DNA of 64,000 nucleotides from Macrostomum lignano (GCA_002269645.1 NIVC01001853.1:62001-126000), one strand, 5' to 3'. Numbered from the stretch's first letter, positions 3 through 51,359 are shown. The notes: generated by a model not told the origin, from the letters alone. Program-made: numbers and translations.

Positions 3-986
3 GATCAATGGGACGTTGTGAAGTTCCTGGCGCACACAGTCGCAGACCAAACAAACAGAGATCACTGCTGCATGGAGACAGCGGAAAATGCTGCAATCGA
101 GGGTCAGTTAGAAGTGGTTAAGTTTCTAGTGCACACAGTCGCTGATCAAGCAAACCGTGATCAGTGCTGCATCAAGGCTGCGCGATCTGCTGCATGGCAA
201 GGTCAGTTAAAAGTGGTAAATTTTCTGGTGCAGATAGTTGCTGACCAAACAAAAAGACACCAGTGCTGGATGGAGGCAGCAAAATCTGCTGCAGAAAATG
301 GTAAGTTAGAAGTGGTGAAGTTTTTGGTGGCGACAGTCGCTGACAAAATAAACAGATATCACTGCTGTACAGAGGTAGCGAGATGTGCTTCAGGTCCGGA
401 TCAGAGAGCGAATCTCCGTTTCCAATGCGCAGTCGCGGCTTGCCCTTGTCTTCGCGAAGATGTCGTTGCCTCCGTCGGCCTCGAGCCCGACTGGCTCTTC
501 CAATCCAGCACCATCCTCAGTTTTCCTGCAGCAATGGCCATCGAAGGCAGGAACTCTGTTCTCAACGACACCCTCTCTCGAATGCAGCCAGCTCGCATCA
601 CACAGCTGCTCCGTCTCTCCATCCCCAAAGACACGTCGCTCTTGCTGTCACACTGATCAATGATGAGCGAGTCAGCACAGAGCATGTCGATCTGCCAGAC
701 CGCACTGGAGCCACTGCTCTCATGCTGGCAGCTGATGCAGGTCATCACGAGCTCATTGAGAAACTCATCGATCTCGGTGCGTCAGTGCGTGCTGAAGATA
801 GTCAGGGTCGGACTGCTCTGTCACGAGCGTGCGAAGCCGGTCACGTGCTCGCCGAGCAGCCAAGGCTCTCATCGACAATGGAGCCGATGCCAGCTATCGA
901 GACAGTCAGGGCCTCACGTGTGCGCAGGTGGCACAGCGATTTGAGCGGCGGCAGGTGCTGCGGCTGCTGGATCTCAGTGGAGCGGG
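3..986 (+). pseudogene. Ankyrin-repeat exon (5' end outside window) of a putative ANK-cGLR gene; two frameshifts (~620, ~853)
   Basis: Repeats of AAxxGQLEVVKFLV type (3-~400). After a frame change at ~620: TGATALMLAADAGHHELIEKLIDLGASVRAEDSQGRTALSRACEAGHV. After a change at ~853: AAKALIDNGADASYRDSQGLTCAQVA...LDLSGA. Ends at GG|gtgagt donor (987), phase 2. Confidence 0.8.
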
Positions 987-1295
987 GTGAGTTCTTGCTT
1001 GGATTTACGCTCGTACTTTTATTTATTCTTTAGATTTTTACGACGCTGCAAAAGATAAAGGAAGTAAACATCGAATCTTTTAGCTTCCAGAGTTTATAAA
1101 CAATGGGCCGTATGCAGAAAGCTCTGTCTAGGGTAGTCCGGTCTTGAAAAGCTAGTCTGGACTTGGATTTGGTATGCAGAAACACAGAGTTAGACCGGTC
1201 TACTATAGCAGAACTAGGGTAGCTGGACCATAGACCATAGACTGAACTACCCAAGTCCGGACTAGCTAGTCTGGACTAAGCTTTCTGCATACGGC

Positions 1296-2313
1296 CATGG
1301 ACTTCTATACTTGGCATCTGGACTGGAAGCGAAAAAATTACCGCAAAAAAAATTACCACATGAGGCCAATTGTTTCCATAGATATGCATTTATCAAAACT
1401 GCTGCGGCTTATATCGAATACAACTAAACTCACTTTCTTCATTTGACTCTGCATAATGAAAGCATATCCTTCGTTATGGTGAAGGATATTCGTTATGTGT
1501 TCGGCATTCGGCTGCAGGAGTGGCTTCGCAAATAGTTCGACACCAGACAGGACTGTGACGTTTCATTGTTATCCACTTAACAAGCCGAGTCTACTGGAAA
1601 TATGGAACAAGGCGAATCCGAGGAAGGACTTTGAACCCACCAAGTATACTCTCGCATCTGCTCACTGCATTTCACATCTGAGGACTTCGTTGAGTCAACA
1701 CAAGACAACAATTTCACTCGCAAAGCGAAGAAAGGCCAGCTGGCTAAGCGTTATCTGAGACAAGATGCGGTGCCAACTATTTTTCCAAACGCACCATCAT
1801 GCCTTTCCTCTGTCCGCCCAGCAGCTCGGATCACATGCACTGCGACATCATCTGCGCGGATGGAGGCGGAAAACAGGCGCCTGGATGATCAGATTTCCGA
1901 CTTCTTTGCCACTGATTCAATTATCGATTGCTCGCCACGAGAAATTCAAGAACTGCTAGATTCTGAGGGGACGAGGCCAGATGGGTTTCAAACTGCAATT
2001 TGCAACGAGTTCCTGTGCATCTTCATGCTGGAGCAGAAGCATGTCTGCCAGGTAGCGTGCTCCATCTGCAATGCACCAAATCACACAAGTACATATGCAC
2101 ACATGCATCTTTTTCTCTGCACACTGCTAATATATATAAAAAAATGTATATAATTCGTTCCCAATCACAAGTAGTCCTGCCTGAATATAAAATTAATCAG
2201 TTTGAATTTGCGTCGTTGCCTCGCGATAAAAAATTAAATACATTTCTGATGGCCTCATGTGGTAACGCGAATTTTTTCGCTTCCAGTCCAGATGCTAAGT
2301 ATAGAAGTCCATG
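1296..2313 (+). mobile_element. Non-autonomous P-element-like DNA transposon carrying a THAP domain
   Basis: 44-bp TIRs CATGGACTTCTATACTT(G/A)GCATCTGGACTGGAAGCGAAAAAATT (1296-1339; 2270-2313, 1 mismatch). 7-bp TSD ATACGGC (1289-1295; 2314-2320). Subterminal inverted TTACCACATGAGGCCA. Confidence 0.8.
1495..1800 (+). pseudogene. THAP (C2CH zinc finger) domain, frameshifted at ~1650
   Basis: CSAFGC...TFHCYP...IW...PRKDFEP, then in the shifted frame RICSLHFTSEDF...YLRQDAVPTIFP (THAP C-terminal AVPTIF box). Confidence 0.8.
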
Positions 2314-3829
2314 ATACGGCCCTTAAGGTAGCTAGACCATAGACTATATACTGAACTACCCAAGTCCGGACTAGCTAGTCTGGACTAGGCTTTATACATA
2401 CGGCCCAAAGAAAAGTGAGTTTGATTTAATCAGCATTCGCGTTTGACCACAGACAATGGTTGGGAAGGAAAAGAAAAGTTGATTTATTCAAATACCACGT
2501 ATTTAGCCCTTCCATGTCTTGATTTTAGCCCAAGGGAATAAAAATTTTGCCCCTAACATTGAGGCCGCACAAGCCATTAGAAGAAGAGTGAAAATTTCAG
2601 ACCTTGACAGACGAAGACGTGTCAACGTTTATGTCAGCAACGGGGATTGGCTCCGCTATGCCAAAGAGTGTCAACTATAGACAGAAAAATTTCAGTATCC
2701 CAAGTCTGATTTTTCGTATCTATGATTAAATTGAAAGCTTGCAGTATTAACTAGGCCGCAAAAAGGAACACTCGTACTATTGTGAAAGCCAAAAAAGACA
2801 ATCGAAGTCACAAACTGCCAATTGATTTCGGTTTAAACTGTGATTTTTTCACTCTGTAATGTTTTCTTGTTTTTATGGCTGTACGAGTATGCATACGCTC
2901 GTAGACTTGCTTTAGAAATTTGGTCTGAAATTCAATTCGTGAGTCGACAGTCCTAAAAGCTCGCTGAGACCGCGATCAAATGAGGCCAACTTTCGTGTGA
3001 TAGCACAACTTGTACATCAAATTTGATTCCTTTGTACACTGATCTTGCGACTTTGTGGCTCATTGGATGCCAGTCTGTGAATGAGCCTCAGCTGCAAAAA
3101 GTCATTTGTCCCTTGCAATTACTCCACTAGTTTCACTGCTGTAAAAACCCTGCCTGGCTTTCCTTCCCGCATTGCAGAAGCCCAGAGGCCCGGCAGGCAG
3201 CCGCTCACCGCTTGGATTCGGGCCTCCATTGGTGAGTTTGACCGGTTCCGCTTTAACTGTCGCATTGCGCCTTCCAACAGGCTGGCAGCTTGGGGCAGAA
3301 ATTGCAGTGAATCTCATGAGGACTGAGATTGGGTTAGACTGAGTGCTGCAGCAGATGTTCGCTCGCTAGTTGGGCTGATAAATTAATACAGGAAATTCAT
3401 CAGAGGACTGTTCCCACGTCCTAGCATATTTAAATTCACTAATTCAAAACAACCCTGAGTTTAACTAGGTTGACGAGTGTAAACGAGCATTCGCTGCTTA
3501 GAAAAAAGCACTGAAATCAATCGTGTTGGTTCACTATGCAGCAAAGAGTTGGCTGTTCATACCGATTCGTCATGCTACGTCGCAGTACAAAGGGCGCAGT
3601 GCGTTTGTACATTTTGAAGGATTCAGAGGAGCCAGTCTCCAATGCTTTTAGGGGCTATCTGAGGCTGAGCTATATCGCAGACGGTTCATATTGGTCACGG
3701 ACACAAACCGCTTGTGACGATAGTTGGTCCCAAAAACAACATTCCAAATATAACTCAAGGTCCTAGTATAAGTAGTATTAAAAGACGCAAAGATCGTGTA
3801 ATTTTTAGGAAAATTAAAAAATACGGCTA

Positions 3830-4150
3830 GTACCGTCGTCCAGGTTCGGCAGGCCAGTCCTCAGCACCCAATCCAGTTCCAGCACAAACAGGAAAAGCGC
3901 CAGAGTGTCACCCTGCAGCCCGCCTGACGACGTGCTCCATCTGGCGTCATCACCAAAGCGGTCGCGTCCTGGTACATTGCCAGGGAAAATCAGTTGCTTC
4001 GGTGCATTGTACATGTACGCGCAAAGCACGAGAGGCAGCGCACTGCGAACCAACGAGTCGAAAGCCTTGAGAAGGTCAATAAATATCACCACGAGACTTG
4101 ACTGATGGGTGCGCGCCTTCTCGATAAAGAGGCAGAGGGCTAGAATCAGT
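3830..4150 (-). mobile_element. Non-LTR retrotransposon reverse transcriptase fragment
   Basis: LFIEKAR.HQ..LVVIFIDLLKAFDSL and SGGLQGDTLALFLFVLELDWVLR match LINE RT motifs (FIDxxKAFDS; GVxQGxxLSP-like). Confidence 0.75.
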
Positions 4151-4297
4151 GTCACTGTACCGCAGAATGAGATAAGCAAATATAAAGCAAATAAAGAGAG
4201 GCAACGCGCAAAAGCCGGCTACCAAGACTGAAAACTAATATTAAGCGATCTGGACTTCGACGTGACAACGTAAAAATTTATCATTAAAATGTACCAG

Positions 4298-4695
4298 CGA
4301 AACACCCATACGCATCTCGGATCATTCCAGGCTCTCAGACGACTCCCAGCAAGACTGCCGTCTCAGCGAGGAGCTGCATCGACTGCTCAGCGATGCGGGA
4401 TTCACCGAGCAGAGAACAAAGTGTCAGCAGAAACTGGCTGACTGGCTAGAACTAGTCGCTCAAATCCTCACACAGGATGACAGGTAGATGACGGGCAGCT
4501 ACGCAGAGGGCTGGGCCAACAGTCTGGTGCAAGTGAACGGCAGGACAGCTGCAGACTCGGACATTGACTGGACTGTGCTGGTTGCTGGGCAGCAGTTCCA
4601 TCTGGAAGGTGGCTGCAATGGACGATATAGTCCCTGCAGAGACGCCACTCGGCTGCAGGTCACGGAGGGCCACGCACAGGTGGCAGTGGGGGCAG
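4298..4695 (+). pseudogene. cGAS-like/Mab-21 NTase exon with the GS...DxD catalytic motif; in-frame TAG at 4485-4487
   Basis: ccag|C acceptor (phase 2, matches the ANK donor). Reads ETPIRISDHSRLSDDSQQDCRLSEELHRLLSDAGF...TQDDR*MTGSYAEGWANSLVQVNGRTAADSDIDWTVLV...VAVGA. Donor G|gtgagt at 4696. Confidence 0.75.
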
Positions 4696-5304
4696 GTGAG
4701 TGAGGCTAGGTTCATCATCAGAACGCTGAGATCCGCATGCAACTGGAAATTCATTTTTTTCTCAATTTTAAATTCGCAACCGAGTGGCGCCCAACCTCCA
4801 GCAGCTTCTGTGACTGCGAATGTCGGCTTGGATTTGTTCAACATTGCTGAGAATAATTATATATACATCGAAAAATACTCTGCACTTATGCAGGTCCGTC
4901 GCCACCAACAAGGGGGACAGGACGCCGGGGAGAGGGAGACAGGGGACAGTGTACTCCCATGTACTCCCAGTAAAAGCTGAGAGGTCGAACATGCCAATGT
5001 TTTATCTGCAAATATGCAGTACTGTCTTTTAAATCGATCAAATACTTTAATAGCAAGAAACTCTTGAAACTGCTGTTTTTTGTTGGGAATTCTTGATTTG
5101 GATTATCGCCTTGACCCCTCATCATAAATTACATACATTTACCTTGACCCCTCCATACATTTTTGCTTAAATTTTTACTCATTGATTACAGCATTAGCAC
5201 TGACACAGAGCAAAATAAGCTCAACCAACACATTCAAGCAGTTTCAAACCAACCCATCTTTTTCACTCGCCACAAAGCGACTCTCCGCTCACTGCGCTCT
5301 GCAG

Positions 5305-6967
5305 GCAGCCAACCTGCAGTGACAGCCACGGCGTGCGGTGTGCGGCCTGCACAGGACACGTGCCATGCGATCCAGTGCTGCAGCACTTCTGGTGAAGTCA
5401 GAAATAAAATACTGCATTCTTATATTGGTGGCAAAGTTCATCTCGTTCGGGCGACCAAACCGAGCTCGAACAAGGAGCTCAGAGTGAGCTTCAGCTTCCA
5501 AGAGAAAGACATCATGAGACAGCTGAGCACAGTTCAGGGCCAGCTGTTCACACTCATCAAGTTCATCTTCAAGACACTTGCCGCTCACTCTGGACACACC
5601 TGGACTCAAGACCTACCATGCAAAAACTCTGCTTTTCACAATGCTGGCGAAGCATGGCACAGATCCTGAAACTGAGGCTTGGCAGCCCCACAATCTGATC
5701 GCTCTGCTTAAGGAGTTACTCGACATGATGCTGAGCTTCATCGACTCGAGCAGCTCGCCCGATGAGTGCATGCCGCACTTCTTCATGCCCGACGCTCCGC
5801 TCTACTTCAAGAACGCTGGAATCGGCGGCGTCTTCGACAATACGAAGGCGAGGGTTCGAGACCGACTTTGTGAGGTGAGGAGCGACATCGGCGGAGTGGT
5901 CGAGCAGCTGAGGAGACTCGTGAGACCTCTGCAGTCAGAGAAGTTCCACTTTCACCCGTTCACTCTGCTGCCTCTGACAGCGCCGCCTGCTGTCACGGAG
6001 ATCAGGGAAGAAACTGACTATCGAGAAAGGTACTACAAGTTTGCAGACGTGTACAGTGTGGTGCACCAGTGTGTGAGCAAGCTGCAGTCGGAATCGAGCG
6101 ACAGAGACACCCTGATGAGGCAGCTCAGTCTCCTGCATGAGCTGCAGTGGTGCAAGTGCGCCGTCCTTGTGCATGACCGCCATGGCGCATTTGAAGTTCG
6201 GAGAATCTGAGGAGGCTGAGAGACTCGCGATGGAGCTGCAGAGACATCAGGTTGAGTCAGGATTGAAGCCACACTCCGAGTCGTATGATATAATGCTGCC
6301 AGTAGACTCAGACTGGGCGTGGAGGTTCTGCCTCCCCTGCGACTCTCCGCCTCGCTTCCCATTCCTTCCCGAGTTCACGCAGACTCTGTTCACAGCCAGA
6401 CTGTCGCAGCCTCTCTCCTCCCACCTGTACGTGAACTTCCGCTGCCTGAGCTGGAGTCTCCAAGCTGAGCTGCTCCGCAATCGCGCACCTGCAATCGCAT
6501 TCGATCATTGGATTGAACAGCTGCTTGGAGACCCGGACTTGGAGGAGCTGCTCACTCTGGCTCACTACAGCGACTGCCGCGAGCACGTGGAGCTCAGCCT
6601 GCAGCAGATGGAGATGATCGAGAAAGAGAGACGCGTCGCCATGGAGACGCAGGACGAGGAGAAGATCGGCTGGGTCAGGCAGAAGCGGTGGCGAGTTTCG
6701 AACCGCAGCGGCAGCGACAGCGGCGCTCACCGCAGCAGGGAAGATGAGGAGCGGAGGCTGTGGGCGAGGGCGAGGCTGAGGCGAGATGGGACCGACTTGG
6801 GGCGCCTGGTTGCCATGGAAACGGCAGCGGAGCAGAGAGACAGCTGGACTCACGCCAAGCTCAGTCGGATGAGACTGGTGAAGTTCGACAGACTTGATGC
6901 AGCAGCCGGAGTCCTCAAAGTAGCGTCGCAACGTCGAGGCCGGAAAAGGAAGGCTGATTCAGACTGA
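5305..6967 (+). pseudogene. Terminal exon of the cGLR: rest of the NTase core, Mab-21 C-terminal lobe and a helical tail; frameshifts at ~5573 and ~6163
   Basis: ctgcag|GC acceptor (phase 1, matches 4695). Motifs QDTCHAIQC (third acidic residue), HLV...LRVSFSFQEKDIM...LFTLIKFIFK and LKTYHAKTLLF...W.PHNL...CMPHFFMP match cGAS WRLSFSHIEK / SYHVKTAFF / ENYFIP-type motifs. Stop TGA at 6965-6967. Confidence 0.8.
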
Positions 6968-9096: not shown

Positions 9097-9930
9097 TCAC
9101 TGGACAGTCGCTTTGCCATCCGCAGCTTCCCCAGCAGATGTCGCCACGGCAACAAAACTCGCAGCTGCATCATTAGCCGCAGATTCCTCCGAGTTCATGA
9201 CGTCCACCAGTTGGCCCATAGCATTGCTGACCTGACCCGCCATGGCAAACAGGGATCCGATTGAAGACCGGCTGCCACCCCCGATGCTTCCACCGATGCC
9301 ACACACGGATGTCGGGCACGAGTCCACCGAGTGGCGTCCCAGACTGCCCGAGGACGACATCATGTGGAAGCTGCCGCCGACGCTGCCAACGCTGCCGCCG
9401 ATGCAGTGGCCGGAGTGGTGACGCAGGTGAACCGCGCCACTTCGGGTAGTTGACAGCGGCTGCTGATGCTGCTGCTGCACCTGCTGCTGCTGATGGTGGT
9501 GCTGGTGCAGCACCTCGGCAGAGTCGGAGACGCACCCGAAGCTCCCAGCTCGAAGGTGCTGACTTTGGTGCTGCTGGTAGGGCATCCGTGGAGCAGCCGG
9601 TGGCGGCGACAGCATCGGGATAGACGGCGGTCGGTGCTGCGGCTGCTGCTGCTGCTGCTGCGACTGTCCCGGACTTGCCGACAGCATGCGACGCAGTCGA
9701 GCCAGCTGGCTCTCCAGCTGCCGGTTGTGCTCCTCCAGCAGCGACATCCGTGCCTCCAGGCGGCCTTTGTGCGCACGCAGCATCCGAGCTTCCGCCGCTC
9801 CGCCGTCCCCTGCCGACGCCAACGGTGCTGGGGAAACCGGCGGCAGCTGGGGCGGAGGAGGCGGTGGCGCTCGCGAGACGATGCAAGCAGAAGAGCTTGT
9901 AGTTGAGTTCTTGAGCTGCTCGTACTCAGC
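9097..9930 (-). CDS. DMD: Dystrophin last coding exon (C-terminal coiled coil 2 and low-complexity tail)
   Basis: gcag|GCT acceptor. AEYEQLK...[38 protein letters not shown] matches dystrophin [37 protein letters not shown]. 834 nt including the stop. Confidence 0.93.
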
Positions 9931-10064
9931 CTGCGTGTGTGTGCGGGGCAGGTGAGTCGGTCGGTTTGTGATGTGCGCTTAGTGACTGGGGCAGAGAAGG
10001 AGATGCAAAGTTACGAAAGATTAGAGTAGGATATGAGAGCGAGGAACACGAGATGAGAGATTAT

Positions 10065-14790: not shown

Positions 14791-14832
14791 CCTCATCTAT
14801 ACAAACTTATTTTTCGATACATATCGGCTTAC

Positions 14833-14871
14833 GCGTCGTTACTCGCAGACGACGGTGGCGGTGGCGGCCGG

Positions 14872-14903
<32 letters not shown>

Positions 14904-15443
14904 GACCTCCGCCAGACGAGTGGCATAGGCCTCCACCCGGCTGTGCACATCTCGCCCAGCTGTCTGCGCCGCTGTGCCACTCGTAGCTTCAATGGCCTGA
15001 CCCTCTCGGACTGTCTGCACGGGTAAGTAGCCCAGCTTGGCGGGACTCGAACCCGGGCCCGACGATGCGCCGCTGCTGCCAGCGGATGCGCTGCTGCCGC
15101 CGCCGCCAAACCGAAACTTGTTGCGCAAAGTTCGACTGAGACTGCGAAGGCTGTCACCGCTACCGGGAGCTCTGACGTACTCCTGCATGGGGTGGCTGGC
15201 CTTGTGGTGCCTGGCGGTTCTGCCGGCGAAGAAGCACTCCTGGCAGAGGTTCAGATTGAAGCATTTCAGGCATTTGTAACGAAGGCCTCGCATTGGTAGG
15301 CACTTGCAGCTAGAGCAGCGGATGGGGTGAACAGAATGCTCTGAGCACGTGAGCCGGTGCAGCACGGGGAGCCAGACGAGAGACTGCGGCTCCAGGCGTA
15401 ACCAAGCGAGAAAATGCGACATTCTGATGCCCACGCCATCAAC
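14833..15443 (-). CDS. DMD: Dystrophin exon (EF2 end, ZZ zinc finger, first syntrophin-binding motif)
   Basis: FLAWLRLEPQSLVWLPVLHRL...CSSCKCLPMRGLRYKCLKCFNLNLCQECFF...GYLPVQTV...HSRVEAYATRLAEVE. ttttag|GTT acceptor and GC|gtaagc donor. Phase 0->2. Confidence 0.95.
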
Positions 15444-17165: not shown

Positions 17166-18312
17166 TCTCTGCACGATTCAAGTGCCGAAAATCCCGACTT
17201 TAACCATAATACTCGACCTTAATATACTGTCAGGGTGTATACAATGTAGTCTAGTACGTCATACGTACTTTAACAGTGTTAGAATGATCGGGTGTATTGA
17301 GGTCAAGCCTATATGTTGCATCATTTGGGTTTTTACTGACCTCTCAGTCGACGCACTGCACGCGCCTCTAAAAAGCGATCAGGCGTACTACATGTACATG
17401 TAAAGGCCGATTGTGCATATTTGCATCCGATAACAAGATGCGGTGCAGATGCCAACCCATCAGTTACCAGTAGCTAGTCAGAGGGCGCGTCCTTATTCTC
17501 GTAGAAGCCAGCTAGAATAGAATAAATAAACCATATGGTTGAAAATTCTCGGCCTGCAAAGCCCTGGGACTATATGTAATAACTGCTAATTCTGGCTATC
17601 AACAGAATGCATTAACCATTGAAAGCGCTAGCTCTATCTGTGTGCGCATTTTCGGCTACACATCAATGTATCCATCGAATTGTGGGAAAGCTGGCAGCAG
17701 GATGATGCGAAAATCCCCCATCCTTCGACCCAGAATCCTACGAAAATACGGCGGCCCCCCAATTCCTCCAAACCCACGACTTTCGACATCCGCATCATCC
17801 CGCGGCTCCCTGCTGGGTCTTTCTCCAGCAAGCTAGTTTGGGATTCAAAATACAATTAGTTCGAGGCCAGATTCGAGTCATTTGAGACTGGTGGAAGGGG
17901 TGGTTGTCATACAAAAAACGATTAGAAAGTCAGGGCCGATGTACACTCGTATGAGCAGTATTGGCGCGCTGATACATGTGCTCAAGAGTCAGTGGAATGC
18001 GCAGAACTGACATCAGTGTTGCGTGGTTATGGGGACGAAGTCGCCGAAGGCTTTGCAGCCAGGGTGCCCACAGCTTTTTTCACGACTTGAAAAAAGTTCA
18101 CGACATTAGTTATTGTTGTTGTTTGTCAGGGAATGAGAAATGGGATAGAAAATCTTGGAGACTATCCTATCTACTGCTCCTAGCTGGTTTCCTGTGCATC
18201 CACAGGAGCTCAAATTTAAGTGTAAGTGCCTCAATGCAGGTCAGTAGCTTGGGCCACAATGGCTCAGAAAAGACAGAACAATCAAACCGCCAACCTTAAG
18301 CAATCAACGCAC

Positions 18313-19076
18313 CTTTTCGAAGCACGAGCGCACAGACGGTTCAACGTTGCTGCCACCAAAGCTGGCCGCTTCGCCCAGGTGACGCGGCACCTGCATGCAG
18401 TCGTGCAGCAGCAGGCCCAGACGGCGTTGGTCAAGGACACCTCTCTCGTCAGCCACTGACGCAAACAGGTAGCGATACTTGTCTTCCAGACCGGCCGCCG
18501 ACAGCAGCACCAAGCCGACCTTGAAGCTCAGAGCTCTCATCCGGCCGCTGCGCACGTGATCGTACACATTGAGCAGCCAGTTCAGACTCAAATCGATTGT
18601 CTGCGCCTGCAGTGACGCATCCGCGATGCGAGCTCGCGACCTTGCAAACAGGCTGGCCAGGCAGTTACTCATCTGGCCGACGTCGATCAGACACTCGCCG
18701 CCGCCGCTTGGGCCGCCAGTTGAAGCCGAGGCGATGCCGTGGTCGCGGAATACGTCGGCAGCCGAGGTGAGCGACACCAAGTCCAGGTACAGAGTTCGTT
18801 GAAGACGTTTCAATTTTGCCGCAGTGCGATAAGCCGAATAGCGGATGCTGTTCAACTCGGCCAGGCTGCGAGTCAGCTCCGTCATCACCGGATGGTCCCA
18901 GCTGGTCTCTTGCGTGTCCGAGTTGCGGTAGTATGGCACCTGGTTGCCGCTGGGGTGGAGCAGCCGCTGCCACGGCGCTTGGACGCTGTTGGCTACGGCT
19001 GGGTGCGCGAAGCTGGGACCCGGCAGGGGGCTGGGCAGCTGAGGGACAGCCTGACTCGGCTGCTTGTGCGGCTGTG

Positions 19077-19119
<43 letters not shown>

Positions 19120-19575
19120 ATGATACTGTCGCTGCTGCAGCAGAGGCGACACCGGAGCAATCGCCCGAGCTGGCGACTTCTGCGGCTGCAAGGACGGTGA
19201 CGTGCCCGCGGTGAACGAGGCCGACATGGTGCCGCCGGGACGCCGCAGCGAGGCCAGAAGTCGCGCCCTCGCTCGCATCGCCTCGTGCAGATCCCGGTGC
19301 CGGCTGCGCAGGTCGCTGATCTGCGACACCAGCGTGTGCGTCAGCACCACTTTTGAATCGCGGAAGGCCTGCGACTGGCGCTCCAGCGAGGCGACGAGTT
19401 GATCGAGCGGCGCCATGGACTCCTGGAACTGCTCCAGACGGGACAGCTCGCTTGACAGTTGAGCAACTCCCAGGGTGTCTAACTGGGGCAACGCTTCCAG
19501 CTCGCTTTCGGCTGCCAGCAGGCGATGACTGGTCTGACGGAGCAGCTCCTCGAATGCTGACAGGCTGCGCGTGAC
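18313..19575 (-). CDS. DMD: Dystrophin exon (last spectrin repeat, hinge, WW domain, EF-hand region)
   Basis: VQAPWQR...VPYYRNSDTQETSWDHPVMTEL..SLAELNSIRYSAYRTAAKLKRLQ...NWLLNVYD..RSGRMRALSFKVGL...LEDKYRYLF...GSNVEPSVRSCF. 1263 nt, phase 0->0. Confidence 0.96.
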
Positions 19576-19859
19576 CTGACAGGTACAGGTAAATTAAAAA
19601 GCTTTTTAATTTTCATTAATTTTTATTTAATTTTAATTCTACTTTGAATAGTTTCAGGACACTAATAATTCTCATAAAAAAATAATAGAAATAGCACTCC
19701 AACACACGACGAGCCTTCAACTGCTGCAGATTTGAACGATGAGACATCAGCGAAGCATGCGGGTGACGATTTTTCTTTGTAAGTGTCTTACAGATGCATC
19801 GAACTTAACGATACTAAAGCATGATCCTAAGGCCCCAATTGCCTCAAATCAAACACACT

Positions 19860-20378
19860 ATAGTATGACTTCAGATCTCACCATATTATGGCCTCTAATC
19901 ACGGTGATTACCACAGTGAGGCTTCTAATCACACCACAGTGAGGCCTCTAATCACACCATAGTGAGGCCTCTAATCACACCATATTGTGGCCTCTAATCA
20001 CACCATATTGTGGCCTCTAATCAGACCATAGTGTGGAATCTAATCACACCATAGTATGACCTCTAATCAGACCATAGTGTGGAATCTAATCACACCATAG
20101 TATGACCTCTAATCACACCATAGTATAACATCTAATCACACCATAGTATAACATCTAATCACACCATAGTATAACATCTAATCACACCATAGTATAACAT
20201 CTAATCACACCATAGTATAACATCTAATCACACCATAGTATAACATCTAATCACACCATAAAGTATAACATCTAATCACACCATAGTATAACATCTAATC
20301 ACACCATAGTATAACATCTAATCACACCATAGTATAACATCTAATCACACTATAGTATAACATCTAATCACACCAAAG
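19860..20378. repeat. 23-bp minisatellite (CTAATCACACCATAGTATAACAT)n
   Basis: Visible unit with a sequence gradient along the array. Confidence 0.93.
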
Positions 20379-20391
20379 TGTGGCCACCAAC

Positions 20392-21057
20392 CTGCTGCAG
20401 CTTCTCCTGGTACTCTCTGACTCGCAAGTTCAACTCCAGCCATCGCCGTTTCAGTTGATGCAAATTCCTTCGAATCCGTCGCGTCAATCGCAGATTTTTC
20501 TGCTGCGGCTGCTGCTGGTCTTCGCCTTCGCCTCCGGCATCCTCGGATTCGGCTCCGGACTCGTGCCCGCTCTGACTCATCGCACTGGCTGGCCGCGGGA
20601 GTTGCTGCTGCTGCTGCTGCTGCTGCCCACCTGCGAAGTCTTGCTGACCGAAGTAGCTCTCACCCTGCTCCAGGGCCTGCTCAACTTCGATACGACGCGA
20701 CTGCAACTCGCCGACAAGAGTCTCGTGCTCGCTGATCTGCTGACGTAGCGAGGCGCTGTCGCCACCCAGCAGGAGCTGTCGCTGACGAAGTCCAGCGTCT
20801 CGACTGGCGAGCCAATCGTTGAGACTCTTCAGCCTGGCCAGCATGCCCTGCCAGGCGGTGTCCTCCTGGCGACGAATCCGGCTGCGCAGTTCCGCCGCCT
20901 GCTCGCCGAGCCGTCGCCAGCGCTGGTTGACATTGTCCAGCCGAGCTCGGAGTCGAGCTCGAGGATCCGAACTGGTGCCGCCGCAGGACACGTTGGCGTA
21001 GCGATGCGACAGGATCTCCAGTTCGGCGGAGTGCAGCAAACTCTCGGCGTCGAGGTC
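20392..21057 (-). CDS. DMD: Dystrophin exon (late spectrin repeats)
   Basis: cccag|GAC acceptor and CAG|gttggt donor. LDNVNQRWRRL...WQGMLARLKSLNDWL...LLGGDSASLRQQISEHETLVGEL...LKRRWLELN. 666 nt, phase 0->0. Confidence 0.9.
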
Positions 21058-21204
21058 CTGGGAGGTGGGAGACCAACTAGTTTTGTGAGCTGGAGTTTGA
21101 GGCTTTATATGTGCATGGGAGTATATCAAGGCAGCCTCTCTATCCATCCGGCCATCAGGTCCTTTGAAACTTCAGAATAGCAATCCGGCCTGCTCAATAA
21201 TTAT

Positions 21205-27190: not shown

Positions 27191-28014
27191 AAAGAAAGAT
27201 TAAGAGGAAAATTTAAAAAGTGGAGTAGTAGACTAGAATCGTATATAATTTAGAAAAATGTTTTCAATGAAAGCAAAAACCGATAAGTTTGCGAACTAGC
27301 TACTTTCAGTAGAAAAAGCGAATCATTTTTGGCTGGAAATTACTTTATTTGAATAATTTTTTGCAAAACCCACTAGTAGTCACTACAGAGCATAGTCAAT
27401 TGAAACAGCACTCGTTTCGCACTTTAAACTTTCAATGGCGGAATTCATGAAATGGAAAGCATGTAACAACATTTAATTAAAACAATCAACCGACCGACAT
27501 TTACCCTTGTTTTCGGGTCACTTGAGGTCAAATTCCGCTCAAATAGTTCTTGCTTTGCCTCTCCCCAAACGCCATCTTCATAAAGAGTTAATTGGTAACT
27601 TTTTTCGTTATGCAAGGAGCAACTTTTTTGCTGTCTCTCTGGGTTTGCCTACTGAGTTCATCTTCGGCATCTTTGTGCACGAGAGGATGGTGACTGGCTG
27701 AGGAGCATGTCATGCAATTAGGGCGGATGCAGCGTCACAAATTAGAGTGAACTGGTAGCCCAGACTTAGGGGGGCTGGACTGTAACCCAATACCCAAGTC
27801 GATTCTGGGTTCCCCAAGCCGGACCCCCCGAGGGTTGGAAAATTGATATGTCCGACACATGGACATCCTGCCGCAAGATGGCCTGTGCTGCCCACAATGT
27901 TCCTTTGGGATGATTTGTAAACAGACGCTGGTAGAAAACTAAACTGCTTAGGAATGAATGCTAATAAGATTACTATTTTGTAGATAGTGCATCTGGTTAT
28001 CTGCGAGTGCCCGA

Positions 28015-28535
28015 GGAACCCTGAGCACACACAGATCCCTGAGCACACAGAGATCCCTGAGCACACACAGATCCCTGAGCACACAGATCCCTGAGCACAC
28101 AGATCCCTGAGCACACAGAGATCCCTGAGCACACATTTCCCTGAGCATACAGAGATCCCTGAGCACACAGAGATCCCTGAACACACAGATCTCTGAGCAC
28201 ACAGAGATCCCTGAACACACAGATCCCTGAGCACACAGAGATCCCTGAACACACAGATCCCTGAGCACACAGAGATCCCTGAACACACAGATCTCTGAGC
28301 ACACAGAGATCCCTGAGCACACAAAGATCCCTGAGCACACAGATCCCTGAGCACACCGATCCCTGAGCACACCGATCCCTGAGCACACCGATCCCTGAGC
28401 ACACAGGTCCCTGAGCACACCGATCCCTGATCACACAGATCCCTGAGCACACCGATCCCTGAGCACACAGATCCCTGAGCACACAGATCCCTGAGCACAC
28501 GATCTCTGAGCACACAGATCCCTGAGCACACAGCC
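28015..28535. repeat. 16-18-bp minisatellite (GATCCCTGAGCACACA)n
   Basis: Visible. Confidence 0.95.
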
Positions 28536-28566
28536 GCAGCACTGACAGTCGCAACCCCAGCCTCAC

Positions 28567-29198
28567 CTTCAGCCACGCGTCCTCTCCTCCTCCATCTTCC
28601 GCAGTTCCCGCAGCCGCAGCCGCCAGCCGCTCTTCCCAGCAGGCGGCCCTGGTCTCCAGTTTCGCCACTGTGGCCTCATCACCGGCCGCGGCATCTCCCG
28701 TTTTGCTTGCATCCTCAGCGGCCCCGTTGGCCAGCCGGTCGCAGCCGTCGGGATCGCCGCCGCCGCTCTCTCGTCGACGCCTGGCCGCCGCGGCCGCCAC
28801 CACTGCAGCGTTGGGTTTCGGCGGCGGCTGTGGCGGCGGCTGCGAGTCGTCCTCGAGCGCCGCTCCGTTGCTGCAGGAGGTCGCCGCAGCTCCGCCGCCA
28901 GCTCCTCGAATGCCGGCAAGAGTCGCCGACAGTCGAGCGAGTCGCTGACGCAGCGGTTGAGTGTCCTCTCCGGAGTATTTGGACCTGAGCACTTCGCCGC
29001 TGTCGATGAGACTCTCGAGCTGTCGGACCAGCTCTGTTGGCGGCGGCGCCGGGCCGTCGGCGACTTGACTGAGCAGCGACTCGGTCTGGCGGCACTGCTG
29101 CTCCCACTGGCGCAGCTCGATGGCAGCCTCCTCCATCTCGGCTCTGCGCTGCTGCAGATTTCGTTCGGTCGCTTCGCAACTCGCTACAGTGGCAGCGG
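28567..29198 (-). CDS. DMD: Dystrophin exon (spectrin repeat plus low-complexity linker)
   Basis: RNLQQRRAEMEEAAIELRQWEQQCRQTESLL...LRQRLARL...EDAWLK|gtgagg. Phase-1 acceptors at 29198 or 29183. Confidence 0.85.
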
Positions 29199-29344
29199 CT
29201 GCGGGTGGCGGGCGGAGGGTCATAAACTCACTTGGTTTATGAGTCTGACACAGACTGTTTCAGCTGACAAGCACTACCTGACACACTTTTTTCTTTGACT
29301 TTCACTGAAACCTGACTTATCTACTCATCTGCTGACAACTTTTC

Positions 29345-43830: not shown

Positions 43831-44709
43831 CAACCAAAGAAGCTGAAGTATCATGCGTCGAGCCTCTAAAAGGAAAAGTACAAAAAGAAAGTGACGATCC
43901 AATCCGTCTCAGTCACTCTCTGCACCAGGCCAGAGCGGCAGCCTCAGCTTCGGACCCCGAGATTCATATCTGCCTAGAAAATTGGAAATGATCGAATGAA
44001 TGCCAGGCCCAGATCTCGGCATGGCCTGATCACGCGGTGGAGATTGGGCCGAGCGGGGATAATGGAATGCATAGCGAGAAAGAGAACAGAACGACAGATT
44101 GCAGTTTTTATGCGCGAGACTCCCCCATGCTCCTCAGTTCAGCCATTAATTCCTTCATCTTCCCCTTCCCGCTCAGAAGATGAGACAGCCGAGAAGTTTA
44201 GAAATGCTACCAACGGCCTCTGAGCAGCCGTTCTCAAAAGTGAAAATCTCCCCAGAAATTCTCCCCCCTTCATTTTCATCCGGGGGGGGGGGGCTGATCG
44301 TTGAGCAAATCCCAGTCCTGAGGCATTATCCATCTCAGAGCTCGGCTCTCCTGATATAGTAATCAGCTCAACGATGTCCAATGTTAAAGTAATGTTCTTT
44401 CTCCGGGCACCGCTTCGGTCTTGTTATCTTAGCGATTATGGTTTTAGAGAGGAGTTCAGTTTTGACAGGATGAGCGCTGCCCATCGATGCTTGCTTGAGC
44501 AATATTTAACTGCTCAATATTCTGTCGGCTCCTCGGGCGGGACCGGGGACCAGCAGCTCAGATTCTGTCAATTTGTCAATGCTCATTTTTTAAATTCAAG
44601 TTCGCGTATTACGTGATGTGCGTCTGAAAAATATTGAGTGAATTTTTATGTAGAAAAACTACTCGGGATTTGAATTTGCGTGACGGTGAGGTCCGGCTGT
44701 AGAAATGGC

Positions 44710-44836
44710 TAACTGACTAACTAAGTAACTAACTAACTAACTAACTAACTAGCTAACTAACTAACTAACTAGCTAACTAACTAGCTAACTAACTAACTAA
44801 CTAGCTAACTAACTAGCTAACTAACTAACTAACTAG

Positions 44837-44872
<36 letters not shown>

Positions 44873-44873
44873 A

Positions 44874-44908
<35 letters not shown>

Positions 44909-44912
44909 ACTG

Positions 44913-44949
<37 letters not shown>

Positions 44950-44957
44950 ACTGACTG

Positions 44958-45022
<65 letters not shown>

Positions 45023-45026
45023 ACTG

Positions 45027-45059
<33 letters not shown>

Positions 45060-45067
45060 ACTGACTG

Positions 45068-45098
<31 letters not shown>

Positions 45099-45124
45099 GA
45101 CTAACTAACTAGCTAACTAACTAG

Positions 45125-45178
<54 letters not shown>

Positions 45179-45192
45179 GACTAACTAACTAG

Positions 45193-45235
<43 letters not shown>

Positions 45236-45236
45236 G

Positions 45237-45279
<43 letters not shown>

Positions 45280-45356
45280 GCTAACTAACTAACTAACTAG
45301 CTAACTAACTAGCTAACTAACTAACTGACTAACTAACTAGCTAACTAACTAACTAG

Positions 45357-45391
<35 letters not shown>

Positions 45392-45500
45392 GCTAACTAA
45401 CTAACTAACTAGCTAACTAACTAGCTAACTAACTCACTAACTGACGAACTAACTAACTAGCTAACTAACTAGCTAACTAACTAACTGACTAACTAACTAG

Positions 45501-45543
<43 letters not shown>

Positions 45544-45628
45544 GCTAAATAACTAACTCACTAACTGACGAACTAACTAACTAGCTAACTAACTAGCTAA
45601 CTAACTAACTAACTAGCTAACTAACTAG

Positions 45629-45667
<39 letters not shown>

Positions 45668-45732
45668 GCTAACTAACTAACTAACTAGCTAACTAACTAG
45701 CTAACTAACTAACTAACTAGCTAACTAACTAG

Positions 45733-45796
<64 letters not shown>

Positions 45797-45797
45797 A

Positions 45798-45832
<35 letters not shown>

Positions 45833-45845
45833 ACTGACTAACTAG

Positions 45846-45885
<40 letters not shown>

Positions 45886-45893
45886 ACTGACTG

Positions 45894-45966
<73 letters not shown>

Positions 45967-45970
45967 ACTG

Positions 45971-46003
<33 letters not shown>

Positions 46004-46011
46004 ACTGACTG

Positions 46012-46104
<93 letters not shown>

Positions 46105-46185
46105 ATAACTAAACTGACTAACTAACTAACTAACTAACTAACTATCTAACTAAGTAACGAACTAACCAAGTAACTAAATAATTAA
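44710..46185. repeat. (CTAA)n microsatellite, ~1.5 kb
   Basis: Visible. Confidence 0.98.
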
Positions 46186-46849
46186 CTCTTTCAGAAATGC
46201 CTGCGCCAACGAATCTGAAAAATTCCGCAGAAATTTAAAAGAAAGTTCGCTTGCAGCTTCACAGCCTCATCAGTCTTTAAAAGTATTCCCAAAGGATTCA
46301 AACGAGGAGGCGAGACAGAGAATGCCAATGGACTCGGCTAAATTACTCTTGGGTTACTCAGCCTGGATAGGTCCCGGGGTCGACTCAAACTGATGAAAGT
46401 TGCAGCCCCAACTCCCCAGCATTACTGGATTAGTTACCATCCCACTGTTGAAGCGGATTAGAGTCGTCGATAGTAAAAGTACATAGCCAATTTTTTTCTA
46501 TATCTCAAAGCGTCCAAGAGCTCCCGAGAATTGCATATCAAATTTTCTTTGCCCTTCTCTATGCCCTTTGCGTGGTGGAGTCCTGCTCAAAGTGTAATAC
46601 CGCACTGGGCGGTTCTCAAAGCAAACGAGAAGGTAACAGTGCAGTGGATTATGATTAAAAGTCAATGGAGAATTTCCCTTCTTGCTTCCTCACAGAGTAA
46701 TACACAGAGTATTTCCAACCTACACAACAGCGTCGCAAGCACAATGTACCACTGTGTGGGGCTTATAGCTTTAAATGCAGATTCTCCACTTGAATTGAAT
46801 GAACTGGTTACTTCTGAACACTCAGGTGCAAACACATGACACACTCGTG

Positions 46850-47869: not shown

Positions 47870-48240
47870 ATGGTTGTCGAGGACGCCTAAGTAGTCATCA
47901 AGGATGCGTAAAAGGTCGTCAAGGACACCTAAGTGGTTGTCAAAGACGCCTAAAAAGTCGTCAAGGACGCCTCAAAGGTCGTCAAGGACGCCTAAGTGGT
48001 TGTCAAAGACGCCTAAAAAGTCATCAGGGATGCCTCAAAGGTCGTCAAGGACGCCTCCTAAGCGGTTGTCAAAGACGCCTAAAAAGTCATCAGGGATGCC
48101 TCAAAGGTCGTCAAGGACGCCTCCTAAGCGGTTGTCAAAGACGCCTAAAAGGTCGTCAAGGACGCCTACATGTAAGGGTTTGTCCAAATGAAGACCAAAG
48201 CGGTTGTCAATGACGCAAAAAACAGTCGTCAAGGACACCA
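47870..48240. repeat. ~21-bp degenerate repeat (GTCGTCAAGGACGCCTAAAAA)n
   Basis: Visible. Confidence 0.85.
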
Positions 48241-48253
48241 ACAACAAACTCAC

Positions 48254-48560
48254 GTCGTCTCCGTCGAAAATCCGACCAATTACGACGCGTTGACTGGTAA
48301 GAAAAGCCTGCGACCTTTCTAACCACTCGGCTACTGGCTGGTGCTTCAGCTTCTGATCATCTCGCTGTTTCTGCTGCTGCTGCTGATGCTTCTCCTGCTG
48401 CACCTGCTGCTGACGGACTTCTTTCACTTCCTCGGAGCACACAGCCGCTCGAAGCTCCATCAATTGGAGCCAGTTTTGCTCCAGCTCGCTGAGACGGCGT
48501 CGCATCTCGTCTGAGGATTTCAGCTGGCGCTTTGGATGCTGCTGCTGGGTGCCTGAGCAG
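48254..48560 (-). CDS. DMD: Dystrophin exon (spectrin repeat)
   Basis: ttcag|C acceptor. EMRRRLSELEQNWLQL...VAEWLERSQAFL...GDD|gtgagt. Phase 2->0. Confidence 0.85.
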
Positions 48561-48659
48561 CTGAAGTTTGAGGCAGTTTACATAGAATTAGCTGGATGCT
48601 AATGAATGCATGTCACTGACATTTAACCTGGATAGATTCATGGGTAATTCTCATGGCGA

Positions 48660-50646: not shown

Positions 50647-50710
50647 GGATCGTATTGCTCGCACATTAAATAACATGAAAGAATCCCATTTCTAAGAATG
50701 CAAGATTCAC

Positions 50711-51086
50711 CTCATCCAGCCGATCCCGGATCTCCTCAGCCTCCTCAACATCCGCTTTGCCGGCGGAATCCTTCCCGTTGACCTCCGCAGAAGCGACTGC
50801 GCCATTCCCGCAGCCTCCAGCAGCCGCAGCCTCATCTTGAAGAGCCTTCAACCGAATTCCCTCAGCTTCCAGGCCGATCTGCAGAGCTTCGAATCGAGCT
50901 TGCACTTTTCTCAAGCCGGGCAAATCGTCCCAGTGGGTCAGGCCTGACAGCCAGGTCTCGGCCTCTGCCGCTGCACCGCCGGCGTCGCGGAGCCAGGTGA
51001 GACAGGCATCCAGAGATGCTGCCAGCTTGGCGGTCTTCAGTGGCTGACTCTGGCGCTCCACCTGCTGTTCCTGTGATGCATCGGTG
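50711..51086 (-). CDS. DMD: Dystrophin exon (spectrin repeat); most 5' exon I can identify in the window
   Basis: ctgcag|C acceptor. LAASLDACLTWL...DDLPGLRKVQARFEALQIGLE...IRDRLDE|gtgaat. Phase 2->0. Confidence 0.85.
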
Positions 51087-51359
51087 CTGCAGGTGTTGAG
51101 GCACAGACGGGGGTCTGGTATATAATTATCTGCAGATCAGGAAATTGCTACTCAGGTAAGTCAGGTAAGACCCCAGGTAAGTAGTATGATAAGTTTTTTG
51201 GAGTTTTAAAGTGGAATTAGAGATTCTCAGGCATACCTTGTCCTTGTCCTTGTCCGTACCTTGTCCGCTCAGCTGCCAATCTACATCTTTCGGCCCTTCA
51301 TCTCGCTCCGCTTTTTCTTTCCCCGCCTGGTCTCTTCCATCGCTTCTTCTAATGTATCT

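Follow-up and report, generated by a model that had tools for sequence, protein, structure and literature searches.

A probable unprocessed pseudogene of the ankyrin-repeat cGAS-like receptor family in the flatworm Macrostomum lignano

Introduction

Positions 3-6967 (plus strand) of the window, the 64,000-nt stretch of Macrostomum lignano DNA that was analyzed (GCA_002269645.1 NIVC01001853.1:62001-126000), raise the question of whether they hold a hidden gene for one protein in which ankyrin repeats (ANK) are fused to a cGAS-like receptor (cGLR), as the original prediction proposed. The locus is very probably an unprocessed, duplication-derived, intron-containing pseudogene of the M. lignano ANK-cGLR family. 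Judged from its sequence, this copy could not give rise to a full-length protein, because four indels and a nonsense codon have ruined its frame. It is a further copy of an already catalogued family, and neither the family nor the ANK-cGLR architecture is new. Nor is the gene hidden in the sense proposed, since GenBank and UniProt already list intact paralogues with an ANK/Mab-21_C annotation.

Gene Structure

The exon model was taken from P0012, an intact paralogue with canonical GT/AG sites and exons that translate at 99-100%; the window copy has its three introns at the same positions and in the same phases as P0012 (Table 1). The predicted join from 4695/gtgagt to ctgcag/5305 is right in both position and phase, and is identical in P0012. 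The join proposed from 986 to 4298 needs correction, in that a micro-exon intervenes and the real acceptor lies at 4330/4331, not at 4297/4298. The presence of another exon between 986 and 4298 thus undoes the predicted gene model while leaving the domain architecture unaffected. The micro-exon was recovered by tblastn at 3179-3229 with 94% identity, is bordered in the window by cattgcag and gtgagt, and, together with the acceptor ttccag/G, is conserved across all paralogue loci examined. The codon split between exons B and C is TGG (W) in the window versus CGG (R) in all paralogues.

The 5′ end of the gene lies beyond the window start, because the paralogues have more upstream ANK repeats and a start codon; at the other end, exon D closes with a TGA (6965-6967). 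When the four indels are neutralized, the four exons form a single 1,020-codon frame with one TAG. The ancestral gene would have comprised at least four exons, namely an ANK exon, the 54-nt micro-exon, a first NTase exon, and a large last exon encoding the second part of the NTase, Mab-21_C, and the tail. Its protein would have run from an ankyrin array through an NTase of the cGAS/Mab-21 fold, with GS...D-x-D...D intact, to an alpha/beta C-terminal domain of ~250 aa.

Introns 1 and 2 measure 2,191 and 1,099 nt in the window versus 146 and 288 nt in a paralogous locus (L001), transposon insertions having enlarged them ~15-fold and ~4-fold, respectively. The element in intron 1 contains a THAP-domain ORF (1495-1758; Pfam THAP, 6.2e-6) and sits inside a MITE-like palindromic repeat (1104-1296) that is duplicated at 2324-2405. 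The reverse-transcriptase-like fragment in intron 2 is graded as weak because its Pfam match to RVT_1 reaches only E = 0.19.

Table 1. Coordinates of the features in the window.
Feature	Position	Strand	Details
Exon A	3-986	+	5′-truncated by window start; ends at donor GG/gtgagt
Transposon in intron 1	1296-2313		44-nt terminal inverted repeats, 98% complementary
Exon B	3178-3231	+	Conserved 54-nt micro-exon (G-SPEARQAAAHRLDSGLH-); tblastn, P0012 residues 289-305
Reverse-transcriptase-like ORF fragment, intron 2 (weak)	3814-4179	-	Motifs FIDLLKAFD / GGLQGD
Exon C	4331-4695	+	Spine helix (N-terminal), then first half of NTase core; acceptor ttccag/G
Exon D	5305-6967	+	Rest of NTase core, Mab-21_C lobe, C-terminal domain, charged tail
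GSYAEG	4494-4514	+	Exon C; GS at 4494-4499
SDID	4557-4577	+	Exon C; D-I-D at 4560-4568
QPAVT strand	5310-5327	+	Exon D
AQDT, third catalytic Asp	5349-5372	+	Exon D
Mab-21_C lobe	~5480-5980	+	Exon D
RVSFSFQEK	5481-5507	+	Exon D
KTYHAKT	5608-5628	+	Exon D, Mab-21_C lobe
MPHFFMP	5770-5790	+	Exon D, Mab-21_C lobe
Family-specific C-terminal domain	~5980-6690	+	Exon D; followed by charged tail
FS1, 1-nt deletion	623^624	+	Paralogues ATCTCTCAAAG, window ATC-CCCAAAG; 6 paralogue copies intact
FS2, 5-nt insertion CTCGC	848-852	+	In ankyrin repeat (GHV/RAAKAL); absent in 6 paralogue copies
Nonsense TAG	4485-4487	+	Exon C; CAG (Gln) in 6/7 paralogue copies, ATG in L004
FS3, 2-nt deletion	5571^5572	+	Paralogues TTCAAGAGACAC, window TTCA--AGACAC; 7 paralogue copies intact
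FS4, 1-nt insertion (T)	6164	+	In CKCAALCMTAM; absent in 7 paralogue copies

Domain Identity and the Catalytic Set

A fusion of ankyrin repeats to a cGAS-like NTase of the Mab-21 fold, the core of the original prediction, is well supported by Pfam Ank_2 and Mab-21_C, the GS…DID…D set, and the match of a paralogue model to cGAS. Within the ankyrin region, 3.7 degenerate 99-nt/33-aa ANK-like units lie in tandem at 21-389 (Ank_4, 1.9e-8), and, after a linker, canonical ankyrin repeats follow at ~700-960 (Ank_2, 3.3e-20); the window translation also matches Ank (5.6e-13), so that the repeats named in the prediction are confirmed. Its motifs GSYAEG, SDID, AQDT, RVSFSFQEK, KTYHAKT, and MPHFFMP were likewise all located as described.

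For the NTase domain, the Pfam search that had been proposed as a check gave a divided result: the conceptual translation of the window copy scored 27.8 bits with Mab-21_C (PF20266) and so passed its gathering cutoff (24.1), and 13 of 13 paralogues matched this model too, but the N-lobe model PF03281 matched neither the window translation nor any of these 13 paralogues. The N-lobe is recognized at the fold level only, and both models match P0129 and P0133, which are related to the family profile at a greater distance. A single-sequence search of the PDB was marginal (8gjy, E 0.011); a profile search matched only cGAS (1.8e-5), cGLR1 (7e-3), and MAB21L1, and hhalign against a cGAS/cGLR alignment gave 97% probability (E 1.1e-10). 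The structural comparison with cGAS was made on an AF2 model of an intact paralogue (P0003; pLDDT 79.6, pTM 0.81) rather than on the broken window copy, and upheld the predicted fold for both lobes. The best 34 Foldseek matches in the PDB were all cGAS (E 3e-7, prob 1.00, 350-390 aligned columns, TM(target) 0.51-0.57), followed by MAB21L1.

In the P0003 model, G65-S66 follows beta1, D87/D89 open beta2, and D148 opens the next core strand; in the hhalign alignment the third Asp is displaced by 3 columns from cGAS D319, and insertion of a 1-residue gap restores the register. The catalytic set, that is, h-G-S, [DE]-h-[DE], and a third acidic residue, is present in the window copy. It is intact in 28 of 30 close family members and, family-wide, in 86 of 106 complete cores (81%), down to 37% identity. 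The active site is degenerate in the other 20 cores, which include both effector fusions, one with a kinase (P0012) and one with a caspase (P0053).

The C-terminal domain had no match in Pfam. Modeled separately with AF2 (pLDDT 78.3), it gave nothing significant against the PDB (best E 1.3); the weak matches were all to TPR-like helical repeats, and a TPR identity is unjustified.

Disabling Lesions

The claim that the exons encode one protein fails at five points, since exon A contains two frame changes, exon C an in-frame TAG, and exon D two further frame changes, all directly visible in the three-frame translation. FS1 adjoins a run of C and shifts the frame within exon A; the TAG stands two codons 5′ of the GS motif (TAG-ATG-ACG-GGC-AGC), directly before the Met of MTGSYAEG; FS3 lies directly 5′ of the KTYHAKT helix; and FS4 falls where the C-terminal domain begins. 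In a base-by-base alignment with paralogous genomic copies from one assembly (two from L001, one each from L002, L003, and L004, and two from L005), each lesion was absent from the 6-7 copies aligned, and all five are thus specific to the window copy. Furthermore, the parental intron positions are kept, as in an unprocessed pseudogene. An alternative genetic code or programmed frameshifting was considered for the TAG and the frameshifts and was rejected because the paralogues have CAG (ATG in L004) and keep the frame at each of the sites concerned.

The copy is 84-86% identical to intact paralogues in protein and up to 94% in DNA. As a gauge of relaxed constraint, its 25 window-specific substitutions were sorted by codon position (6/8/11), but the sites are too few, and the intact paralogues also show no third-position bias. 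No protein from this locus was found in a collection of 15 billion proteins, and a look-up of the terminal ORF (6137-6967) in public assemblies, aimed at transcripts or independent contigs, found no record.

The Family in M. lignano and Its Relation to Known Systems

The locus is part of a large expansion specific to this lineage, as had been suspected. One search returned 46 hits, and another gave 726 relatives at E<=1e-3, 75 of these at E<=1e-30; every relative with a name is an annotated M. lignano protein, and at 50% identity they form at least 75-100 clusters. With 84% identity over the NTase and tail, PAA68676.1 (BOX15_Mlig016402g1; P0001) is the closest paralogue. Rows 89-93 of Table S3 in Li et al. 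(2023; PMC9980059; 10.1101/2023.02.22.529553) are M. lignano cGLRs, five members having been cloned for a cGLR screen, including this paralogue as construct #93 (row 93), and ANK-cGLR is already among the architectures listed there. None of the five carries an "active" note in that table; the M. lignano constructs lacked the ANK region in the screen, and the only ligands were dsDNA and poly I:C (Li et al., 2023).

The window copy is of the same species and gene family as these catalogued cGLRs, especially PAA68676.1 and PAA93208.1, and shares their exon structure, ANK-NTase-tail order, and catalytic motifs, but differs from them in its four frameshifts, one nonsense codon, and transposon-expanded introns. 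ANK-cGLR fusions of other animals (Li et al., 2023, Fig. 1C/4C) likewise carry an ankyrin array on a cGLR NTase core, where it is proposed to be a module for protein or ligand interaction; the flatworm family differs in its massive expansion within one lineage and in the added C-terminal domain of ~250 aa without a significant PDB match. Throughout its catalytic domain, vertebrate cGAS (PDB 7uyz, 4k9b, 6edc) has the two-lobed NTase fold of Mab-21/Pol-beta type seen in the flatworm family, and the two share the GS loop, the acidic triad, the PAVT strand, and the (S/T)YH(V/A)KT and (Y/H)F(I/F)P motifs. Identity to cGAS is, however, only 13-18%, and the flatworm family has the extra ANK and C-terminal domains and an N-lobe that Pfam does not match; nor was a zinc-ribbon DNA-binding insertion noticed in it. 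MAB21L1/2 (PDB 5eog/5eom), the second-best structural match group, also have this fold. According to Li et al. (2023), MAB21L proteins have no working active site, which the flatworm family keeps. Unlike the flatworm family, they are single-domain, single-copy developmental genes.

Alternative Explanations

Two readings would alter the account of the locus itself. It is highly unlikely that this is a functional ANK-cGLR gene with a frame broken only by errors of assembly or sequencing, as the single repaired protein of the original prediction would imply, even though two of the five lesions (623^624 next to the C-run, and 6164) are single-base indels, which are the most frequent errors in long reads, the copy keeps its catalytic motifs, and identity to intact paralogues is high. 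Such errors would have to account for five independent disabling changes within 3 kb, among them an insertion of 5 nt, a deletion of 2 nt, and a C>T change to a stop that are atypical of long-read errors, for their absence from every paralogous copy aligned from the public assembly, for the R>W change where the paralogues are invariant, for introns bloated by transposon insertions, and for the lack of any protein from the locus in the 15-billion-protein collection. Still more improbable is that the ankyrin and NTase parts are separate genes and their fusion a gene-model artefact. Some gene models of the family are clearly chimeric, such as P0002, which spans two tandem copies in L005. In P0012, however, the ANK exon is open up to a canonical donor, the micro-exon and NTase exon continue the phase exactly, and the introns joining the three are short (146 and 288 nt); moreover, GenBank (BOX15_) and WormBase/UniProt (A0A1I8...) independently give ANK+Mab-21_C proteins at dozens of loci, and ANK-cGLR is a recurrent architecture in the survey of Li et al. 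(2023).

A further question concerns the function of the intact members rather than that of the window copy. We infer that these are ligand-gated synthases of nucleotide second messengers in innate immunity, in which the ankyrin array and/or the C-terminal domain may serve as a sensing or autoinhibitory module. That the family is instead a non-enzymatic Mab-21-like scaffold, comparable to MAB21L1/2 or MiD49/51 and retaining the cGAS fold only for binding or assembly, is unlikely, though it has points in its favor: the M. lignano constructs not flagged as active in the published screen, the unmatched PF03281, the degenerate active sites in 20/106 cores, including the kinase and caspase fusions, and the reported absence of cGLRs/cGAS and STING from other flatworms. 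The last point concerns planarians and parasitic flatworms; the literature found on STING/cGAS absence covers only planarians and cestodes, with nothing on Macrostomum. Against the scaffold reading, many genuine cGLRs are reported to be inactive in vitro without their ligand (Li et al., 2023), and if catalysis were not under selection, there would be little reason for GS / D-x-D / D to be invariant in 81% of complete cores. A more far-reaching reading is that the family is a diversified, NLR-like system of immune receptors specific to flatworms, whose ankyrin arrays would read protein ligands, as the original prediction had surmised, and whose output would be either a nucleotide signal to a non-STING receptor or an effector fused directly to the protein; this is offered tentatively, as a minority possibility.

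Significance

The value of this locus in itself is small, since it is a decayed paralogue in a repeat-rich region; what it records is the birth-and-death turnover of an expanded immune-type family. The family, in turn, provides context rather than discovery, the M. lignano members and the ANK-cGLR architecture being already in the cGLR literature. What is under-explored is the very large ANK-cGLR repertoire of M. lignano, in which some members are fused to a kinase or caspase, those having degenerate active sites. The high copy number, the frequent pseudogenization or loss of the active site, and the fusions to effectors together mark a receptor repertoire that evolves fast, and this makes the intact paralogues reasonable candidates for cGLR activation by ligands other than nucleic acids.

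Exon structure of the window copy

The region 3-6967 (plus strand) is eukaryotic DNA in which three-frame translation gave recognizable protein segments scattered over different frames (see table), with further frame changes within the last exon at ~5572 and ~6164. The degenerate repeats show a 99-nt period (3.7 copies at 21-389, TRF). Pfam recognized ankyrin repeats (Ank_2, 3.3e-20; Ank_4, 1.9e-8) and Mab-21_C (27.8 bits against a gathering score of 24.1) in the window translation, with no match to the Mab-21 N-lobe model. The GS / D-x-D / D set is still present.

P0012, a kinase-fused paralogue with an intact frame, maps to locus L001 in five exons at 99-100% identity and with canonical splice sites, in the order ANK exon, 54-nt micro-exon, NTase exon, large exon, and, for this paralogue, a kinase exon. 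In a tblastn comparison of P0012 with the window, residues 289-305 (SPEARQAAAHRLDWGLH) matched 3179-3229 at 94% identity; the micro-exon flanks (cattgcag before, gtgagt after) are conserved in every paralogue locus examined, and the acceptor ttccag/G at 4330/4331 is common to all paralogues. The micro-exon match and the conserved acceptor thus define exons A-D of the window gene, whose 5′ end falls beyond the window, together with its start codon and additional ankyrin repeats. The original prediction had joined 4695 to 5305, which is right, and 986 to 4298, which is wrong: the true acceptor is not cag/C at 4297/4298, and the micro-exon lies in between.

Introns 1 and 2 measure 2,191 and 1,099 nt, versus 146 and 288 nt in L001. 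Nested transposons occupy 1104-2407 in intron 1, where an element with terminal inverted repeats (TIRs) and a THAP-domain ORF sits inside a palindromic MITE-like repeat (arms 1106-1136 and 1266-1296) of which an 82-nt segment is present twice (1215-1296 and 2324-2405); a weak RT-like fragment also lies in the enlarged introns.

Features of the window
Feature	Position	Strand	Basis or remark
Degenerate 33-aa repeats	3-~400	+	three-frame translation, frame 0
Canonical ankyrin repeats	~660-850	+	three-frame translation, frame 2
Canonical ankyrin repeats	~850-986	+	three-frame translation, frame 1
NTase-like segment	4331-4695	+	frame 0, TAG in frame at 4485-4487
Exon A (ANK)	..986	+	P0012 and paralogue comparison
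Exon B (54-nt micro-exon)	3178-3231	+	P0012 and paralogue comparison
Exon C (NTase exon 1)	4331-4695	+	P0012 and paralogue comparison
Exon D (large last exon)	5305-6967	+	P0012 and paralogue comparison
1-nt deletion	623^624	+	paralogue alignment
5-nt insertion CTCGC	848-852	+	paralogue alignment
CAG>TAG nonsense, two codons upstream of GS motif	4485-4487	+	CAG in six copies, ATG in L004
2-nt deletion	5571^5572	+	paralogue alignment
1-nt insertion	6164	+	paralogue alignment
~1-kb element, 44-nt TIRs (98% complementary)	1296-2313		terminal inverted repeats
THAP-domain ORF in that element	1495-1758		Pfam
Dystrophin-like, Q-rich/coiled-coil C-terminus	ORF 9100-9978	-
Dystrophin-like, EF-hand_3 + ZZ zinc finger (2.3e-10)	ORF 14832-15443	-	domain match
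Dystrophin-like, WW + EF-hand_2 (1.8e-31) + EF-hand_3	ORF 18307-19593	-	domain match
Dystrophin-like, spectrin repeat (4e-7)	ORF 20371-21171	-	domain match
Dystrophin-like, candidate further exons	28000-29259, 48104-48577, 50669-51136	-
(CTAA)n x367 array	44709-46187		example of satellite array
Nested 78/293/371-nt periods	53277-55085		example of satellite array

Disabling changes

Base-by-base alignment with 6-7 paralogous copies from five loci revealed five disabling changes that, among the aligned sequences, only the window copy carries (see table). In addition, the window copy has TGG (W) at the codon split between exons B and C, versus CGG (R) in all paralogues. With nothing but the four indels neutralized, the exons read as one 1,020-codon frame interrupted by a single TAG, and the lesions therefore fully explain the fragmented ORF track. 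The single protein proposed for the locus thus fails. An assembly error is an unlikely source: no paralogue shows any of the lesions, and among them are a 5-nt insertion, a 2-nt deletion, and a substitution. Since the intron positions are kept, the alignment argues strongly that the window copy is an unprocessed, duplication-derived pseudogene. No record of the terminal ORF of this copy (6137-6967) was found in public assemblies.

Elsewhere in the window, exons of a dystrophin-like gene were recognized on the minus strand (~9100-51100). Micro- and minisatellite arrays reach an extraordinary density at 10058-64000 (more than 40 arrays, each 0.3-1.8 kb long, with periods of 4-40 nt). The arrays cause a strong GC/AT skew that is strand-asymmetric, and the "long ORFs" of this part are mostly translated repeats.

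Size and variation of the family

When the conceptual NTase and tail translation was used as query, 46 proteins came back, and all the named ones belong to Macrostomum lignano, a free-living flatworm; the best matches are 84-86% identical to the window translation and annotated as ANK_REP_REGION or Mab-21_C domain proteins. A core profile of 13 sequences, run through a full HMMER scan, matched 726 relatives at E≤1e-3, of which 75 reached E≤1e-30 (both numbers are clusters at 50% identity). The named representatives checked were all from M. lignano, and the farther, unnamed hits carry Pfam Mab-21 and Mab-21_C. With so many relatives, and all named ones checked from M. lignano, the family is by sequence a large lineage-specific expansion, as the original prediction had guessed.

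Members occur in tandem (L001, 1-1414; L005, ~6861 and ~18642). In L001 the second copy sits 8.6 kb upstream of P0012, and of the DNA matches to the last exon of the window it is the best (94%). The 16-kb gene model P0002 in L005 covers two complete tandem copies, and its annotation is probably chimeric. The C-terminal end varies between copies (window 6686-6967 versus L003, L004, and L001): after ...IGWVRQK, the window, L002, and L005 continue into a charged RWRVSNRSGSDSG... tail, L003 lacks ~190 nt and ends shortly, L004 runs into other sequence, and L001 into the kinase. A ~250-aa C-terminal domain conserved within the family gave no Pfam match and no significant match to PDB folds (best E 1.3, weak TPR-like matches only).

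Likeness to cGAS and published record

The core profile matched only cGAS (1.8e-5), cGLR1 (8gjy, 7e-3), and MAB21L1 in the PDB, over the C-lobe, and hhalign against a cGAS/cGLR alignment covered the stretch between the (S)QPAVT/SPAVT strand and the C-lobe end with 97% probability (E 1.1e-10). For P0003, an intact ANK-less paralogue, the AlphaFold2 model (pLDDT 79.6, pTM 0.81) had cGAS structures as all of its top 34 Foldseek matches (E 3e-7, probability 1.00, TM 0.51-0.57), aligned over 350-390 columns spanning the whole catalytic domain, with MAB21L1 next in rank. The family is thus cGAS-like at the level of sequence profile and predicted fold. In the model, G65-S66 follow beta1, D87/D89 open beta2, and D148 opens the adjacent strand; this predicted placement follows the canonical arrangement of Pol-beta NTases. 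Of 30 close paralogues, 28 keep the whole GS / D-x-D / D set, as do 86 of the 106 complete cores across the family.

The Pfam domains and the profile and fold matches uphold the ANK and cGAS-like architecture originally predicted; its motifs, domains, and second join stand, and the single protein and first join do not. The description as "hidden" does not hold either, since the architecture and M. lignano members were already catalogued in a survey of ~3,000 cGLRs (Li et al., 2023; bioRxiv 10.1101/2023.02.22.529553; PMC9980059). ANK- and TPR-fused cGLRs are among its known architectures, and it reports nothing beyond Mab21-like proteins for "nematodes and most platyhelminthes." Five M. lignano constructs (#89-93) appear in its Table S3 as part of a 140-enzyme biochemical screen; #93 is PAA68676.1 (BOX15_Mlig016402g1; P0001), which among the paralogues is nearest to the window copy, and #92 is a further member of that subfamily. 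These constructs begin after the ANK region, the ligands tried were poly I:C and dsDNA only, and the note marking 15 characterized active enzymes is on none of the five (Li et al., 2023). No later literature on Macrostomum cGLRs was found. cGAS and STING have been reported absent from planarians and cestodes. The window locus is a dead, newly recorded copy of an already known kind of gene.

Effector fusions and proposed function

P0012 (L001 10001-14507) runs from the ANK-cGLR-tail protein on into a Ser/Thr protein kinase domain, a fusion verified at the exon level; its cGLR active site has D-I-G and Q-S replacing D-I-D and Q-D. P0053 (PAA93319.1, 2111 aa, outside the window) is annotated as ANK, cGLR core, ANK, and caspase (Peptidase_C14, 2.8e-27). 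Its active site is degenerate as well (D-N / T); this fusion is putative and could be a gene-model artefact.

At the window locus there is no mechanism, because the protein cannot be made. For the intact family, a role solely as a scaffold is improbable; pointing toward it are that no activity has been reported for the family, that active sites are degenerate in 19% of cores, and that both effector fusions seen (kinase; caspase, by annotation only) have degenerate sites. The best-supported model, for the intact family only, draws on the fold, the conserved active site, and what has been published on cGLRs: the members would act as ligand-gated nucleotide-second-messenger synthases, in which the ankyrin array, the C-terminal domain, or both may serve in recognition or autoinhibition.
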